Sequence record: NC_048046.1
Strand: one strand, 5' to 3'
Length of the DNA: 64,000 nt
Part shown: one piece after another, positions 9,877 through 44,506 of the stretch
Layout of the letters: every line of letters starts with the position of its first letter
Position numbering within the stretch: position 1 is the first letter of the stretch
The notes under the pieces: model-generated
Database searches by the model: none
Told to the model about the DNA's origin: nothing
What the model saw: the letters and a program-made list of their open reading frames with translations, nothing else
Program-made: the position numbers and the translations under genes

Positions 9877-9907
9877 TTGACAGCCGGCGCCGGGCCAGTC
9901 TAAAACC
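9877..9907 (+). promoter_or_regulatory. class A phage promoter
   Basis: GTTGACAGCCGG...TCTAAAAC. Confidence 0.7.
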
Positions 9908-18879: not shown

Positions 18880-18881
18880 TC

Positions 18882-19268
18882 ATGGATGAGAAACCCTACG
18901 TCCCGCTGGCCGACGTCCTGCATCGCCTGAAGATCGCGCATCTCTATGGTCACGATACGGTGGAAGTGTCCACGGCGGACCTCGGCCGCGCCGTCGAGGC
19001 GTTGGAGACAGCGTTTGGGCGGAAGTCCTACGAAGTGGGGAACGCCCTACGTGGCTATTTCAGCGGCACCTTCGATAACGCGGATGAGGCCTGGACCGCA
19101 CTCAGCGAGCGGTTCAACCGAGGCTTTCCTTCGCCATCAGGTCGTCAAGTGGAGATGCGCACTTCTATCCATCTAGGCTCCACGGCCGGCGGTAACGAAA
19201 CCGAACGCGACCGAAAGCTGCGTGAGGAATTGGCCGCCATCCTCGAAAAAGAGAAAGCCGAAACATAG
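18882..19268 (+). CDS. hypothetical protein
   Basis: ORF in gene run. Confidence 0.6.
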   Translation: MDEKPYVPLADVLHRLKIAHLYGHDTVEVSTADLGRAVEALETAFGRKSYEVGNALRGYFSGTFDNADEAWTALSERFNRGFPSPSGRQVEMRTSIHLGSTAGGNETERDRKLREELAAILEKEKAET

Positions 19269-19271
19269 CAC

Positions 19272-19314
19272 TTGACGAGGTCAGGGAGTTTCTTTACATC
19301 CTCGTTCGACGATC
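19272..19314 (+). promoter_or_regulatory. class B phage promoter
   Basis: TTGACG..GTTTCTTTACA..GACGATC. Confidence 0.75.
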
Positions 19315-19328
19315 ACTGAGGAGGTCCC

Positions 19329-20613: not shown

Positions 20614-21284
20614 ACGACATCAAGCACATTTCGTTCGACGTCTGGAAGACGCTGATCGACCCCAGCCCTGAGTTCGGCGTCGCGCGCCGGCAGCTTCTGA
20701 TCGACACCTTCGATCTGCCGCCGGCCCAAGTCGAGGCCGCGTATCGCAAGGTCAAAGATTCCTCGGACAACGAAGCGGAATCCAACGGGATCGGCTACAC
20801 CAGCGCCCAGGTCTACGAGAACCTGATGGCCGCACTCGGCCTGCCATCCGACGACTGGTGGGCGCTGCGTTCGAAGATCGAGGCGCTGTTCGCCCAGCAT
20901 CCGCCGATCGTGCGACCCGGCGTCGCCGAGACGTTGCAGACGCTGCAAGCGGCCGGCTACGGTCTGTCGATCTCCAGCAACACCAACTTCGTCGCCGGCG
21001 CCTGCCTGCGCGAGGTCGTCCTGGACCACCTCGGTATCGAGTGGTCCTACACTCTCTTCTCGGACCAGATGGCGATCGCCAAGCCGAACCCGCTCATGTG
21101 GCACGCCGTGAAGTCCCTCGCCGCGCTTCACTCGAACGCCGAGCCGCATCAAATCCTGCATGTGGGGGACAACCTCATCTGCGACGGCAAGTGCGTCGAC
21201 TTCGGGCTGAAGTTCCACTTCATCAACCAACCGGCGGACTTCCCCGCCCTGACCGGAGTCCTTCTGAATGCCCAAGCAGCGTAG
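20610..21284 (+). CDS. HAD-superfamily hydrolase
   Basis: SFDVWKTL, ISSNTNF, AKPNP, LHVGDN. Confidence 0.88.
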   Translation: MNDIKHISFDVWKTLIDPSPEFGVARRQLLIDTFDLPPAQVEAAYRKVKDSSDNEAESNGIGYTSAQVYENLMAALGLPSDDWWALRSKIEALFAQHPPIVRPGVAETLQTLQAAGYGLSISSNTNFVAGACLREVVLDHLGIEWSYTLFSDQMAIAKPNPLMWHAVKSLAALHSNAEPHQILHVGDNLICDGKCVDFGLKFHFINQPADFPALTGVLLNAQAA

Positions 21285-22143
21285 CCCGTTCGCTCAGTTC
21301 GTCGTCCACAGCTTCGACGACCTGGAGAATCCGTCCTTCTGTCCGCGCGACTACTCGCGGCTGAAGTTCGGCTCCGACATCGTCGCCCGCCGCTTCGGTG
21401 ACGAAATGGCCGAGGCCTTCTACGCCCAGCACCGTGATCTGCTGATCACCGATCGCTGCGTCGTCGTGCCGTCCGCCTTCAACGTCGTCGAGATCGCCGC
21501 GACCATCCTGGCCCGCCACTTCATGAACCGTCTGAACGACCTGCTGACGCGGGAAGGCCATCGCGGTGTCGAGTGGACCATCATGCACCGCACGATGAGC
21601 TACGTGGCGGACTACTCCTTCATGCCGAAGGCAGAGCGCGCCGCGATGCTGAAGGCCGACAAGCTCTTCATCAACCGCGACTTCATCGAAGACAAGGTGC
21701 TGCTGTTCGTCGACGACGTCACGATCACCGGCTCGCACGAGCACAAGATCGTCGACTTCCTCGACGGCCTGGGCGTCAAGAACCCGCGCATCTTCTGCTA
21801 CTACGCCCGCTACAACGGCGAGCGCGCCGACATCGAAGCGGCCCTCAACCAGTCCAGCATCAAGGGCGCCGACGAGTACGTCGAACTGATCCGCGAACCG
21901 GGGCATCAACTCGTCGTTCGGGCCGTTCGCTTTCTGCTGGACCTGCCGACGTCGGAACTCGCCACTGTCCTGCGTTTCGTCGACGGGCAGTTCGTGGACC
22001 GGCTGTACCACGCCTGCCTCGCCAAGGAATACGACAAGCAGGAGAAGTACCGCCAGGGCTTCGAGATGATCCGGGCTCGCCACGACAAGGGCTCCGCCTG
22101 GGCCAACCCGCCGGCGCAGGTCGTCAACATCGCGGCGGCCTGA
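21268..22143 (+). CDS. ComF-like phosphoribosyltransferase (PRTase_3 type)
   Basis: DYSRLKFG N-terminus, MHRTMSYVADY, PRPP-binding LFVDDVTITGSHE. Confidence 0.8.
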   Translation: MPKQRSPFAQFVVHSFDDLENPSFCPRDYSRLKFGSDIVARRFGDEMAEAFYAQHRDLLITDRCVVVPSAFNVVEIAATILARHFMNRLNDLLTREGHRGVEWTIMHRTMSYVADYSFMPKAERAAMLKADKLFINRDFIEDKVLLFVDDVTITGSHEHKIVDFLDGLGVKNPRIFCYYARYNGERADIEAALNQSSIKGADEYVELIREPGHQLVVRAVRFLLDLPTSELATVLRFVDGQFVDRLYHACLAKEYDKQEKYRQGFEMIRARHDKGSAWANPPAQVVNIAAA

Positions 22144-22452: not shown

Positions 22453-23114
22453 CGAAGCAGGTCGCCCGTATGGAGGTCGACGGTTCGGTCGTCCGCCTCG
22501 AACCGATGGAGCGCGAGGTCGCCTATCACTACAGCGATGGCAGCGTTGGCGCCTATCGCCAGCGCTCGCTCTACAAGGTGCTGGTCGACGACGTTTTGCG
22601 GGGCTACCTGTCGTTTCCGATGGGCTATGGCGGTCGATGGTCCGTCGTGACGCTGCGTCCCAAACACCGCTACAGCAACGTCTGGCGGCATCTGTACAGC
22701 GATCGTACCGAGCATGGCTTGTTCGAATACTATCGCTCCGTCTCGCCCGGCGTGCTGAACGAAACGGAGAATTGGGGCGAGCATGCGAAGTCCTGGGAGG
22801 ACCGTAACGCCATACTGGCGGCGTTCCCCAAGATGATCGCGCTCGGCCGCGCTCCTTCACCTGAAGAGGAAGAAGCGAACCTCCTTCAGATGAAGGAGGA
22901 CTACGAAGAGTCGGTGCGCCAAGACGCCGCTAACAAGGAGCGTTGGGCGCGGGAACGCGCCGAACGCGAGGCTCAGCAGGCTGAAGCCGCCCGGATCGCT
23001 GAAGAAAAGCGCCTGGAGACTCTCGAAGGCCTGAACTCCATCCTGGCCCGCGAGACCCTGTCCAACTTCGAGCGCGATTGTCTGATGACCGCGATCGCCC
23101 GGTTCTCGAACTAG
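22449..23114 (+). CDS. hypothetical protein with charged helical C-terminus
   Basis: GTGA overlap; C-terminus resembles that of 13554..14318 (ETLEGL..IL....L.N..R..L.TAI). Confidence 0.7.
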   Translation: MTKQVARMEVDGSVVRLEPMEREVAYHYSDGSVGAYRQRSLYKVLVDDVLRGYLSFPMGYGGRWSVVTLRPKHRYSNVWRHLYSDRTEHGLFEYYRSVSPGVLNETENWGEHAKSWEDRNAILAAFPKMIALGRAPSPEEEEANLLQMKEDYEESVRQDAANKERWARERAEREAQQAEAARIAEEKRLETLEGLNSILARETLSNFERDCLMTAIARFSN

Positions 23115-23118
23115 AGAG

Positions 23119-23150
23119 TTGACAGCCGATTGAGGGCGCCACTAAAACTG
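23119..23150 (+). promoter_or_regulatory. class A phage promoter
   Basis: GAGAGTTGACAGCCGA...CTAAAACT. Confidence 0.7.
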
Positions 23151-23175
23151 TCACGACCCATTCAGGATAACCGGC

Positions 23176-23781
23176 ATGAACATCACCCTCCGTAAAGCTT
23201 CTCAGTTCTCCAAAGCGCTGATCGAGGCAGGCCGCAAAACCACGATCAATCGTCTCATCTCGGTGTCCGTCTACGAAGACGCCGTGGAGAAGCCCGCGCA
23301 AGCCCTGGTCGAACTGGCCCAAGAGGCTGTTCAGGAGAAGCTGACCCAAGCGCTCAATCTTATCTCGGGCGGCTACGAACTTCGCGGTCAGATCGCCAAG
23401 GCCAATGCCGACGTCGGCATCAATCTGCTGCTCACCGAGCAAGCCAACCTCTCGGCGCACGAAGTGCTGATCTCGTCGGTGTGCAGCATCGAGTACACCT
23501 ACGACGAATCGGTGGAGCCGAAGTACGCCGACGCCAAGTTGGCTGCGCTGGTGGCACTTAACAAGAAACGCGATGCCTCCGTTTCGATCGTTCAACACGA
23601 CGACCACCTGAACGTGCGCGTCATCACTGACGAGATCAAGGCGCCGCTGAAGGACTCGGTCGCGGCAATCCGTCGGCGTAAGGCCGAGATCGCCGATGAA
23701 CTGACCTACCTGAACGCGAGCACTCGCGTCGAGGTGTCGGAGAACGTCCAGGGCCTGCTGAAGGCCCTGAAGCTGATCTAA
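23176..23781 (+). CDS. helical/coiled-coil protein of unknown function, upstream of structured RNA
   Basis: own promoter; MNITLRKAS start; heptad-rich. Confidence 0.8.
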   Translation: MNITLRKASQFSKALIEAGRKTTINRLISVSVYEDAVEKPAQALVELAQEAVQEKLTQALNLISGGYELRGQIAKANADVGINLLLTEQANLSAHEVLISSVCSIEYTYDESVEPKYADAKLAALVALNKKRDASVSIVQHDDHLNVRVITDEIKAPLKDSVAAIRRRKAEIADELTYLNASTRVEVSENVQGLLKALKLI

Positions 23782-23786
23782 CGAGC

Positions 23787-24054
23787 TTGGGCGAAGGGGT
23801 CTGGGTCTCTACGGGGACGCCGACTTCGCCCGAGGGGTGGAAGCGGAGAAGAGGAACGCAACAGCAAAGATGAGGCTCCGGCCTTCATCATGGAACCCAC
23901 CGCTTCATGCGGACATCTCTTTGCTAACCGGAATTACTCTACGGAGTGCCCTTATGGGCTTTGTTGTTTGTTCCGGACTGTAGAGATTTGTGGGTTGCTT
24001 GTTGTCCGTTGCAGCTTGTCCTTTGTCCCGCGCCCTTATCACCGCTTCCACTCT
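23787..24054 (+). ncRNA. putative structured non-coding RNA (~270 nt)
   Basis: nested stems 23789-96/23824-31, 23837-46/24042-51, 23894-900/23990-96, 23915-20/23982-87, 23928-33/23971-76; two cUACGg tetraloops. Confidence 0.7.
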
Positions 24055-24073
24055 ATCTATACACGGAGTCCTC

Positions 24074-24319
24074 ATGCGTAAGACCTTCTTCGGCGAACTG
24101 ATTTTCCAGCCGGGTGACGATTTCTTCGCCGAGTGGAATATGAACTTCCAGGAAGACCCGGACGGCGAGATCGCCCGCTTCATCGAGCATGATCCGGACA
24201 CCGCCTGGGGCTGCGAGATCACCGATAACAACGACCGCACCGTTCACGCCGCCGATTTCGAGAGCCGTGAGGCTCTGGTCGCGTGGCTGACCCAGAACAA
24301 GATCGAGATCGAGGCCTAG
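24074..24319 (+). CDS. acidic hypothetical protein
   Basis: RBS GGAG; MRKTFFG start. Confidence 0.7.
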   Translation: MRKTFFGELIFQPGDDFFAEWNMNFQEDPDGEIARFIEHDPDTAWGCEITDNNDRTVHAADFESREALVAWLTQNKIEIEA

Positions 24320-25329: not shown

Positions 25330-26053
25330 ACAGGCCATCGTGATCGACCTCGGCGACACCCAAACCTATCACGACCTCGACGGCGTCCACGCCGACTACG
25401 CCGCCGGCATGCGCAAGCTGGGCTACGATGTCAGCCAGGAACTGCGCAAGAAGTTCCTGTCGCCCGGCACCGGACACCCGCTGAAGCGCGAGATGTACGA
25501 GAAGATCAAGGGCACCGACTTCTTTCGGTATCTCCCGATCATGCCCGGCTCGGTCGAGATGTACCGTGCCTTGAAGAGCACGAACGAGCCGGTCATCCTG
25601 ACCGCTTCGCCGCTGTTCGGCGCGACCGAGGACACCTACTACCTCAACCCGTATTGGCAGGGCGCCAAGTACCACAAGCGTGGATGGGTGGAGCACGTCT
25701 TCTTGCCACAGACCCGTCCTTACGAAGACTTCGCCTTCGGCATGCGTCGGACTCACTACTCCGATCACATCGCGATCGCCGATGAAAACTTCATCTGCAC
25801 GACCAGCAAGCGCAAGCACGAGTTCCTGCACCATAAGCACTCGAAGCGCCAACTGCTGATCGACGACAAGATCGAAAACGTCACCGCGTGGGCTGAGGCC
25901 GGCGGCCTGGGCATCCTTCACCTCGATCCCGAGACCACGATGCGGGCGGCGGCTCTCCTTTCGGGTCAGGACTTTGGCTTCGAAGGTCCCGGCGAATGGA
26001 AGCGCTGCGGTTCCAATGGCGGCTTCCTGTTTGATGCGCGGGTGCCCGAATGA
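25307..26053 (+). CDS. 5'(3')-deoxyribonucleotidase-like HAD (NT5C type); start may be downstream
   Basis: [48 protein letters not shown]. Confidence 0.8.
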
Positions 26054-26742
26054 TCGAGGTTCCCGGCATCCGCTCCTTTGGTTTCGTCACCGGATACGAG
26101 CGTAAAGGCCTCTACTCGATCGAGGAGGTTCACGCGCACATCGGCCCCGAACCGCGTGAATTCGATGGCGACATGGTCCCGATGGCGTCGCAGCGCTATG
26201 TGCTGTTCGCCCGAGCCCTCACCTGTGTTCGTTGCGGTCTTGTCGGCGCCTTCTACGCCAAGGAACGCAGCGCGCGCTATGTGAAGTCGACGGGCGAGTA
26301 CCGCCCGACCACGAACTCGTGGCACTTCAACCTCTACGCCCTGACCGACGGCCCGAGCCCACGTGCGATCCTGATGACCAAGGATCACATCGTACCCAGG
26401 GCACGCGGCGGCGCCGACGTTGACGAGAACTATCAACCGATGTGTTCGCCGTGCAATACGCGCAAGGGTCACCGCATCGAAGGCGAAACGGAGGAGGAAT
26501 TTCAGGCCTCGCCGGCGGAAGTGGCGCGACGTCGCACGATCGAGGAGGCTCGCGCTCGCAAGCGAGATCGTCATACCGAGGCGCGCAATCTCCTGATCAA
26601 GCAGGTCAAGCGCCTGTGTAAGGAGGTGGGCCTGGAACCGCCGACCGACAACGAGTTCTGTCGGATCGCCAATCGCAAGCTGTCGGCGCGGATCAGTGAT
26701 CTGCTCCTGATCAAGAACCAGACGGTGGTAGCCTATGCCTGA
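26050..26742 (+). CDS. HNH endonuclease
   Basis: [36 protein letters not shown]. Confidence 0.88.
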
Positions 26743-30807: not shown

Positions 30808-30818
30808 GAGTCTTCGCA

Positions 30819-31619
30819 ATGCAAACCCTTCTGCAAATGGCCACCGACGTGCGTGTTCGCGACGAGTTCAAGCGTAGCGCGTTCATTGAACTGCTCGCAG
30901 CTTCATCGCAGTTCCTGGAAGTTCTTCCCTTTGAGAGTGCTCCGGACGGCGCATACCTCTATCCGGATGGGCGACCTCAGGAGCTACTAAAGATTGCTGG
31001 CGCGGATGTGGACGTCGATATCGCGGACGCTTCTGGTGGTGGTCGATCCAAACACGAGGCGATCCGCGTGCGGAAGATGAGTCGCTATCTCAGCCGTATG
31101 CTCATTAAGGGTCATACCGACAACGATCCGCGAGAACCCAACGGCCTTCTGATCCGCTCTGGGCACGTGATCCAGGGCAGCGTGACGCCCTCAACTCTCA
31201 AGACGGCGTTCAAGCACGTACCGCGTGCAACCCACATCTTGGTCGCGGAGAGCACAAGCCTACCCGTCGATTCTTTCGAAGTCAGCGCGGATGATTACGG
31301 CCGTCATCGCCTTCTTTACAAAGCTGATACGGAACGATCGGTCCCGACTCTGATCCCCTTGCTCAAGACGGGTCTCAATGAGATTGGTGATCCCATCCTG
31401 GGGAAGGGCGCTTTCATCGTTCGGCTGGGCGCGGATGGGGTACGTGGTGTTCAGAACGGCGTACCTGAGGTCGATGACCTCGGGCCGGTTCGGTGGCAGT
31501 TCGTGGAAGGGCGGTGGGTTGAGGGACCTATCGACGAGGCGACCACGCTGCGCACTCGCGTCGAATGGTTGATCAACCTCGCTCACGAGCCCGACAGCAT
31601 CTGCTATATCACTGGCTAG
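30819..31619 (+). CDS. hypothetical protein
   Basis: RBS AGGAG; weaker codon bias. Confidence 0.6.
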   Translation: MQTLLQMATDVRVRDEFKRSAFIELLAASSQFLEVLPFESAPDGAYLYPDGRPQELLKIAGADVDVDIADASGGGRSKHEAIRVRKMSRYLSRMLIKGHTDNDPREPNGLLIRSGHVIQGSVTPSTLKTAFKHVPRATHILVAESTSLPVDSFEVSADDYGRHRLLYKADTERSVPTLIPLLKTGLNEIGDPILGKGAFIVRLGADGVRGVQNGVPEVDDLGPVRWQFVEGRWVEGPIDEATTLRTRVEWLINLAHEPDSICYITG

Positions 31620-44177: not shown

Positions 44178-44506
44178 AGCACGTGCCTCCCAAGACAATT
44201 AACGCAATCCGTCGACTCAGGAAGGTACTAAATCGCACACCAGAATCGTTAGCGCTCCAATTTGATTTGCCGGTAGAGCAGATTATTCAACTTATCAATC
44301 TAAAAAACGTAGCCGACACTAAAGTGGTCCCAGATAGTGAGTCTCGTATTTTTAGTCATGCGGCGGTCATTAGACTTGTAGGACAAAGTGTGTATTCGTA
44401 TCGCGCTATAGCGCGTCACTTTAAAGTCAATGTCGGCACGATAGCAAAGATAGTGGATCGCAAAGCGCCTTGGCTGAAAAAGGCTGCGCGCCGGAAACCG
44501 TCATAA
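44174..44506 (+). CDS. AT-rich gene, tandem HTH-like DNA-binding protein
   Basis: TPESLALQFDLPVEQIIQL and SYRAIARHFKVNVGTIAKI; atypical codons. Confidence 0.7.
   Translation: MKHVPPKTINAIRRLRKVLNRTPESLALQFDLPVEQIIQLINLKNVADTKVVPDSESRIFSHAAVIRLVGQSVYSYRAIARHFKVNVGTIAKIVDRKAPWLKKAARRKPS

Follow-up and report, generated by a model that had tools for sequence, protein, structure and literature searches.

We analysed a 64,000-nucleotide (nt) stretch, referred to here as the window, of the genome of the Caulobacter phage CcrPW (MH588545.1; Dolichocephalovirinae, Colossusvirus), in which a window position equals the record position minus 186000. Between gp279, which encodes a 201-residue protein annotated as hypothetical (23176-23781, + strand, with the stop codon TAA at 23779-81), and gp280 lies an unannotated gap on the + strand (23782-24073), and this gap encodes, on the gp279 strand, a noncoding RNA that is genuine, structured and conserved. 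Judged from the sequences of its relatives, the RNA belongs to the upstream gp279-family gene and not to gp280 (24074-24319, + strand, 81 residues), a downstream neighbour that stands outside the gp279-RNA unit. The first-pass annotation of the locus, made from the letters of the window, had placed a 201-residue gene ahead of a gap of about 290 nt, in agreement with the 292 nt that we measure.

Structure and conservation of the gap RNA

The + strand of the gap folds with a minimum free energy of -126.7 kcal/mol (z -5.1), a stability that none of 200 dinucleotide shuffles equalled, whereas the - strand reaches only -105.7 kcal/mol (z -3.0). Although the genome had been described as gap-free, the first 49 kb of the window contain 11 annotated gaps of 180-695 nt, and among these 11 gaps of at least 180 nt the one between gp279 and gp280 has the lowest z-score (-4.4, the others ranging from +0.8 to -2.35).

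The RNA comprises a 5' hairpin and a core closed by a long helix, all on the + strand. The hairpin, H0 (23786-23834), begins 4 nt past the gp279 stop codon and contains GGGCGAAG/CTTCGCCC; its body is variable and bears a cUACGg tetraloop hairpin at 23805-23818, and its base, CUUGG/CCGAG, is invariant in 10/10 high-GC members. H0 abuts the 13-bp closing helix P1 (23834-23846 with 24042-24054; GTGGAAGCGG/CCGCTTCCAC), whose 5' strand is rich in purines and whose 3' strand is rich in pyrimidines. P1 closes the RNA core (23834-24054), which is supported by a covariance model, R1, and by pair counts. Inside P1 are an irregular helix, P2; P3, a local hairpin at 23869-23889 whose tip reads GGC-UCCG-GCC; and a branched apical domain comprising P4, P6, P7, P8 and P9 (23892-23998). 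Within this domain are the AACCCAC/GTGGGTT stem (23894-23900 with 23990-23996), the P4 hairpin (23900-23912), P6 (23915-20 with 23982-87; ATCTCT/AGAGAT) and P7 (23928-33 with 23971-76; CCGGAA/TTCCGG), together with a second cUACGg tetraloop hairpin, P8 (23936-47), the GCCC-TTAT-GGGC hairpin P9 (23948-59) and a U/G-rich joining strand (23960-23970). After the apical domain, a U/G-rich 3' segment returns to P2 and P1. All stems and hairpins named in the first-pass annotation were found in place, both by direct reading and by folding. A 9-mer, CACCGCTTC, is present twice (23898-23906 and 24040-24048), and because of this duplication the 5' strand of P1 could alternatively pair with the P4 arm; across the family, a conserved alternative pairing of this strand, of the kind expected of a switch, did not rise above shuffles.

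Between CcrPW and CcrColossus, gp279 is 87.5% identical overall. Since the RNA core is 95.5% identical in the same pair, as against 79% at the third codon positions of gp279, the core is, on this sequence comparison, under sequence selection. H0 is merely 48% identical and forms a hairpin in both phages, from which we take its body to be constrained on structure only. The indels between the two phages are three of a single base, all in the core, and one of 7 bases in H0.

R1 was built from five Caulobacter-clade sequences alone and recovers the Brevundimonas phage elements at full length, with E values of 2e-8 to 4e-7. Pairs were counted in a 10-sequence alignment made from this model and spanning three clades. 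Standard pairs occupied 93.4% of cells, as against 42-47% when partners were slid by 1-3 columns; the covariation score was 0.40, as against 0.06-0.10 for slid partners, and the observed values were reached by none of 500 shuffles. Covariation at homologous loci, which the first-pass annotation had set as a check on its prediction, is thereby found, with 38 of 76 pairs changed on both sides and 7-9 in the slid controls. Helix 1 (P1) has 98.7% of its cells paired and two-sided changes at 7 of its 15 pairs, and P3 (helix 4), which is written in different letters in the Brevundimonas phages, has such changes at six of eight. Helices 5-10, which make up the apical domain, are 91-100% paired with two-sided changes, and clade-specific versions of P6 and P7 were seen; P8 and P9 failed to align across clades in this model-fitted alignment with its many gaps. 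Structure-blind alignments and separate folds likewise show clade-specific helices.

The gp279 frame is open through the whole gap in CcrPW only, as each of the nine other members has one to three stops in it, and no reading frame in the region is open throughout the family. A small protein gene or a read-through extension of gp279 was rejected on the stops found in all relatives and on the single-base indels relative to CcrColossus. The gene-sense strand is the more stable one in 11/11 members, by 6-30 kcal/mol, and two G-U pairs in P1 are invariant in the 10-sequence alignment, which together argue for an RNA in the gp279 sense and not a DNA site.

Distribution of the gene-RNA pair

Relatives of gp279 found by tblastn are those of CcrColossus, at 82%, and of seven Brevundimonas phages, at 29-34%; in every one of these phages the gene is followed by a gap of 284-314 nt and then by a gene of about 81 residues. 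R1 finds the RNA in all seven cultured gp279-bearing phages searched, and three additional close relatives came from public assemblies. The gene-gap order is shared by nine cultured relatives and three metagenomic ones. Homologs of gp280 occur in CcrSC, CcrBL9 and Bajun, phages that have neither gp279 nor the RNA. In CcrSC and CcrBL9 (L090:2094-2500 and L091:2109-2500; L numbers are our own labels), the gp280-like match is the C-terminal half of a 155-residue annotated open reading frame (ORF), which may be over-extended over a noncoding stretch of about 400 nt; R1 has no match there.

The gene-RNA pair recurs in phages of 38% to 65% GC, with differing downstream neighbours. The low-GC relatives, at about 40% GC and on contigs of up to 364 kb, lie within dense tRNA arrays that sometimes also hold a transfer-messenger RNA (tmRNA) and the GOLLD RNA. 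R1 matches one of them, L222, at an E value of 6e-4, beginning 48 nt past the stop codon, which is where H0 ends and P1 starts. The architecture of H0 abutting P1 is found in L222, L226, L038, L062, L251 and L056, with z-scores of about -5 in the two tested, and L260 has the P1 helix and lacks the H0 hairpin. On the low-GC contigs this architecture starts 0-6 nt beyond the family stop codon, and the low-GC members that carry it are linked to each other by sequence. In a structure-blind MAFFT alignment of the six H0-bearing low-GC members, H0 was 100% paired (23-60% with partners slid) and P1 84.5% paired (52-64% slid), with 8 of 14 P1 pairs changed on both sides.

Features 3' of the RNA vary among the low-GC members: it is followed by tRNA-Thr, tRNA-Glu, tRNA-Cys or tRNA-Trp, in L038 and L056 a U6 run comes immediately after P1, and in L226 a canonical terminator lies 3' of the RNA, ahead of a new gene. 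The freshwater-2 RNA motif (RF02980) is matched below threshold (40.8 bits, threshold 49.9) at L226:3452-3516, 5' of this post-terminator gene. It is because downstream neighbours differ in this way, and because phages with gp280 only are without the RNA, that we assign the RNA to the upstream gene. As the interval between the stop codon and the RNA is too short to hold a separate promoter, the RNA would be co-transcribed with gp279.

What trails the family stop codon was counted, roughly, at 90 distinct loci. The CcrPW-type RNA follows at about 16 of them, tRNA-Met(CAT) follows 6-9 nt past the stop at about 23, and at about 29 an unrelated RNA of about 205 nt is followed by tRNA-Met. The first-pass annotation had tied its prediction to a structured region downstream of homologous genes; the CcrPW-type RNA is present in the close relatives and in some low-GC loci, and in more than half of the sampled loci a different RNA or tRNA-Met takes its place. 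Two wider scans returned nothing usable: no relative was found in a genome collection, and a DNA pattern scan of viral contigs for the H0 base and the P1 start was too unspecific, returning 120 chance stretches, none with a convincing closing helix; these loci (L097-L216) were set aside.

The RNA of about 205 nt was observed at L033:3580-3786 and also in L016, L021, L049, L052, L060, L072 and others. It is conserved, has covarying stems and, in no fewer than 25 distinct viral contigs, separates the gp279-family gene from tRNA-Met. Rfam has no match to it, and it looks like a further undescribed RNA motif. Homology with the CcrPW-type RNA was rejected, as R1 gives no match to it and it has no tract of the 7-nt units described below. 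Other features of the tRNA arrays were also recorded. GOLLD RNA (RF02032, 189-198 bits) lies about 1.5-2.5 kb 5' of the family gene at L049:397-858, L052:945-1412 and L036:5-469, and tmRNA genes with tag peptides lie some 1-3 kb 3' of it in L015, L025, L047, L057 and L066. A 75-residue ORF right after tRNA-Met (L024:3668-3895) matches the omega/Rpb6 family PF01192 just below the cutoff (E 3.4e-5, 24.2 bits, cutoff 26) and may, from its sequence, encode a phage omega-like RNA polymerase subunit. A relationship between gp280 and the 75-residue ORF that follows tRNA-Met in low-GC loci was considered and dropped, as a comparison found none and the ORF is omega-like.

The heptad tract, the gp279 family and neighbouring genes

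The 3' half of the CcrPW RNA contains a tract of six tandem 7-nt units, each with a UUG end (23984-24025, + strand). All 14 members tested have 3-6 tandem heptads that end in UG and have U or G at position 5, and the location of the tract is constant among them, in the 3' half of the RNA just past the closure of the apical domain. The run of six in CcrPW was found in none of 1000 shuffles, and in dinucleotide shuffles across the family the run has P <=0.002 in nine of the 14 members and P <=0.024 in 13. Period 7 alone stands out, periods 5, 6 and 8-11 giving runs of at most three, and the CcrPW tract is the sole run of at least five heptads on either strand of the window. Among the Caulobacter-clade sequences, 11 columns of the tract vary, every one of them at heptad positions 1-4, and positions 5-7 are without variation, a split for which we calculate a chance of about 6e-4. 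Tandem Repeats Finder (TRF) found no tandem array here, because just two to three of the seven positions are kept.

The gp279 family has a conserved N-terminus, MNITLRKA, and about 20 further positions that are invariant in family alignments. Far from the orphan of the first-pass annotation, gp279 has at least 114 relatives in IMG/VR, and of 8,000 candidates scored with a family profile, more than 2,036 clusters passed E <= 0.001; most of the family resides in the tRNA islands of large phages that have not been cultured. No cutoff-passing match to the family was found in Pfam, NCBIfam, PADLOC or PDB sequences, and in PHROGs one family of unknown function was weakly matched. PF22709, tried as a test for Sipho_Gp157 or Mu Gam-like proteins, matches three of 29 members weakly (best E 0.015). 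The AlphaFold2 model of gp279 itself is mediocre, with a predicted local distance difference test (pLDDT) score of 63; that of a typical low-GC relative reaches a pLDDT of 89.7 and consists of long helices flanked on both sides by a short strand.

Upstream of gp279 lies a promoter-like motif (23119-23148, + strand), composed of TTGACAGCC, a spacer and CTAAAAC, 28 nt 5' of the start codon. The first-pass annotation had put a promoter here, and the motif is indeed present, in two copies per 64 kb against 0.03 expected. The stretch that contains it (23100-23175) is 97% identical in CcrColossus, and the Brevundimonas phages Domovoi and Kikimora have similar motifs at the matching place before their orthologous genes. 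We take the motif, by likeness of sequence, to resemble the housekeeping promoter type of the host. Its second copy in the window (9877-9905) lies just 5' of gp253.

Several further features of the window were recorded. The product of gp284 (26050-26742), annotated as hypothetical, is an HNH endonuclease (PF14279, PF01844), and that of gp276 (21268-22143) is a ComF-like phosphoribosyltransferase (PF15610) whose gene adjoins one for a HAD hydrolase, a pair with synteny kept in Brevundimonas phages. Other long unannotated gaps occur at 18880-19328 (449 nt), 30808-31502 (695 nt) and 44178-44505 (328 nt), with unremarkable fold z-scores of -2.0, -0.2 and +0.6, respectively; the last of them has an unusually low GC fraction of 0.47.

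Relation to known RNAs and possible roles

Rfam 15 at gathering thresholds gave no match in the whole window, and at E <= 10 the region 23700-24150 returned just chance-level matches to mir-92 (12 bits) and a snoRNA (11 bits); in L222 and L226, likewise, no Rfam family matched within the RNA. ARAGORN found no tRNA or tmRNA in the 64 kb and Rfam no RF00005 match, and no intrinsic terminator-like site was detected on the + strand between 22000 and 25500. In CcrPW, GGGG comes after H0 and CUAUCUAUAC after P1, neither of which has the U-run form of a terminator. The earlier statement that the gap matches no tRNA, terminator or riboswitch thus survived searches with ARAGORN, a terminator scan and Rfam down to E <= 10, and the comparison with Rfam covariance models that had been proposed alongside it matched no family. 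A type III toxin-antitoxin system was rejected: TRF found no tandem array, where repeats of about 34-36 nt would be expected, the RNA lies 3' of the gene, and there is no match to a toxin family. An antitoxin-mimic or anti-defence role, also suggested in the first-pass annotation, finds no support in the absence of tandem repeats from the TRF output or in PADLOC, where a single member had a weak AbiEii match (E 0.007) and its relatives had no match.

Among known systems, four kinds come closest. Of these, the phage RNAs GOLLD and ROOL have no known function and often occur close to tRNA islands (PMC12286853). Like them, the CcrPW-type RNA is phage-encoded, elaborately folded, supported by covariation and of unknown function, and its distant relatives lie in tRNA islands, three of which also carry GOLLD a few kb off. 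Unlike them, it matches neither Rfam model, measures about 270 nt as opposed to about 600-800, has no tRNA near it in CcrPW, and is fixed directly behind one protein-gene family, with a heptad tract. A fixed-spacing motif, as in RNAs of the HutP/TRAP type, is present in the form of the three to six heptads in 14/14 members: HutP reads XAG three times with 4-nt spacers, and TRAP reads repeated triplets (PMC2425495). The likeness lies in tandem short motifs in constant register, the HutP site also having a 7-nt period. In the CcrPW-type RNA, however, the triplet is UUG or GUG and not NAG, and the tract sits in a large folded RNA 3' of the gene, as opposed to a 5' terminator or antiterminator leader; HutP and TRAP, moreover, are ring-shaped oligomers, and the candidate reader, gp279, has no similarity to either.

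The position of the RNA, a structured element directly 3' of a coding region and on a shared transcript, also recalls 3' retroregulatory elements and 3'-UTR (3' untranslated region)-derived RNAs, which can control the message 5' of them or be set free as RNA. The lambda sib site and the 3'-UTR-derived RNAs are single hairpins or short sRNAs (small RNAs) ending in a terminator; unlike the sib type, the CcrPW element is a multi-helix domain of about 270 nt with a conserved core and no terminator. Phage T4 tRNA clusters encode stable non-tRNA small RNAs of unknown function, which the RNA of the low-GC relatives resembles in being embedded in phage tRNA clusters, a likeness by description only. 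The CcrPW-type RNA most resembles the tRNA-island RNAs, in its setting, and the periodic-motif RNAs, in its kind of repeat. It differs from both in size, position, motif and partner, and we rate it as new at the level of an RNA family, inside broad kinds already known, and not as demonstrably a new kind of system.

We propose, tentatively and at somewhat less than an even chance, that the RNA forms a tail on the gp279 transcript and serves there as a periodic docking platform, to which an oligomeric protein, probably the gp279 product, would bind. The steps of this proposal differ in strength. The host-type promoter-like site at 23119 would drive gp279, and the RNA probably forms the 3' tail of the resulting transcript, which would fold into H0 four nt past the stop codon, with H0 abutting the 13-bp P1 and P1 enclosing a branched domain of about 200 nt. 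An oligomeric RNA-binding protein would then dock along the six UUG-ending heptads in the 3' half. That the heptads form such a docking track is an idea we hold at close to even, short of calling it probable, because HutP and TRAP oligomers, by analogy, read triplets at fixed spacing. The elongated helical protein made from the same transcript, gp279, would be the most economical docking candidate, and the outcome would be a ribonucleoprotein (RNP) particle or feedback on the gp279 mRNA; that the co-encoded protein does read the heptads, with either result, we regard as somewhat doubtful. A phage RNP in which a gp279-family protein assembles on the heptads in a 7-nt register and acts on host or phage RNA metabolism appears rather unlikely, although it would fit the home of the family in tRNA islands, with the RNA of about 205 nt and tRNA-Met as alternative partners.

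Several observations weigh against a protein-docking platform. The CcrPW-type RNA is absent from over half of the sampled family loci, so that the protein cannot depend on it in general. No recognisable RNA-binding domain was found in the gp279 family by Pfam, NCBIfam or PDB searches, and Foldseek returned just 3kdq, a structure of unknown function (template modelling score 0.44-0.53, E 0.036), and uncharacterised phage proteins. Base-pair predictions give the heptad tract an unremarkable probability of being unpaired, 0.30-0.56. The 10-sequence alignment behind the pair counts was fitted to R1 and so is biased toward the structure, and the sample of distant members is small (n=6). The protein-RNA two-component system of the first-pass annotation accordingly stands in part: a conserved RNA is linked to a gene for a helical protein, and the same RNA is missing at most family loci. 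A complex of the two is inferred from the gene linkage and the periodic motif.

Other roles would leave gp279 aside or reduce the RNA to a part of its message. The RNA could be a free-standing, stable noncoding species cut from a polycistronic transcript and acting in trans on host machinery, for instance translation or tRNA metabolism, much as other structured RNAs of phage tRNA islands might; its place beside gp279 would then reflect inherited gene order and not partnership. Distant members lie in dense tRNA arrays with GOLLD and tmRNA nearby, and tRNA islands are also a frequent setting of GOLLD and ROOL (PMC12286853); three different RNAs can follow the gene in different phages, and the core is better conserved than its coding flanks. 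Yet the gene and the RNA stay together in the Caulobacter and Brevundimonas phages even though the CcrPW window is free of tRNA, the start of the RNA within a few nt of the stop leaves no space for its own promoter, and no processing signals were identified; we judge this role unlikely. A cis-acting element that decides the fate of the mRNA, by protecting it from 3' exonucleases, by offering a site to a double-strand RNase that uncouples gp279 from the genes 3' of it, or, in some phages, by ending transcription, would account for the location directly past the gp279 stop codon, for the long P1 duplex (13-16 bp) with its coaxial H0, for an H0 body constrained on structure alone, and for the U-run after P1 in L038 and L056 and the terminator after the RNA in L226. 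Retroregulation by 3' structures offers a likeness for such an element. A protective hairpin, however, needs neither 230 nt, at least nine helices and a sequence-selected core nor a 7-nt tract, and CcrPW has no terminator-like site here; this explanation seems to us distinctly unlikely.

The remaining two readings are largely excluded by the distribution and strand evidence. A riboswitch-like or protein-controlled 5' leader of gp280 and the genes that follow it would agree with the position of the RNA in CcrPW, Colossus and the Brevundimonas phages, where the conserved 81-residue gene follows it in the same orientation without an intervening terminator. But gp280 homologs in CcrSC, CcrBL9 and Bajun do without the RNA, distant RNA members precede unrelated features (in L226 behind a terminator), and no Rfam riboswitch matches. 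P1, moreover, ends at 24054, about 14 nt before the GGAG of gp280 (24068-24071), and so does not overlap the ribosome-binding site. A riboswitch or leader of a downstream gene was in fact rejected on finding a gp280-like neighbour only in the Caulobacter and Brevundimonas phages, and we consider it very improbable. Still more improbable is that the gap functions as something other than RNA, whether as a small protein gene, a read-through of gp279 or a DNA site such as an origin or iterons. In favour, the gp279 frame stays open across the whole CcrPW gap, and as DNA the heptads could amount to 7-bp repeats. Every other member, however, is interrupted in that frame by one to three stops, CcrPW and Colossus are offset by single-base indels, and in 11/11 members the more stable strand is the gene-sense one. 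The conserved G-U pairs, moreover, would turn into C-A mismatches if the other strand were read, and the compensatory changes keep the pairing and not the sequence.

If the docking proposal is true, the locus provides a new structured RNA family outside Rfam, paired with an unannotated protein family of more than 2,000 clusters, and it would be a small, tractable addition to the poorly understood ornate phage RNAs around tRNA islands. Should the RNP form of it hold, novelty would rise beyond that of a new RNA family. The periodic protein track is a concrete and checkable hypothesis, and, as cultured Caulobacter and Brevundimonas phages able to infect laboratory strains carry the pair, its expression, structure and binding could be described directly, which is impossible for most RNA motifs that come from metagenomes only.

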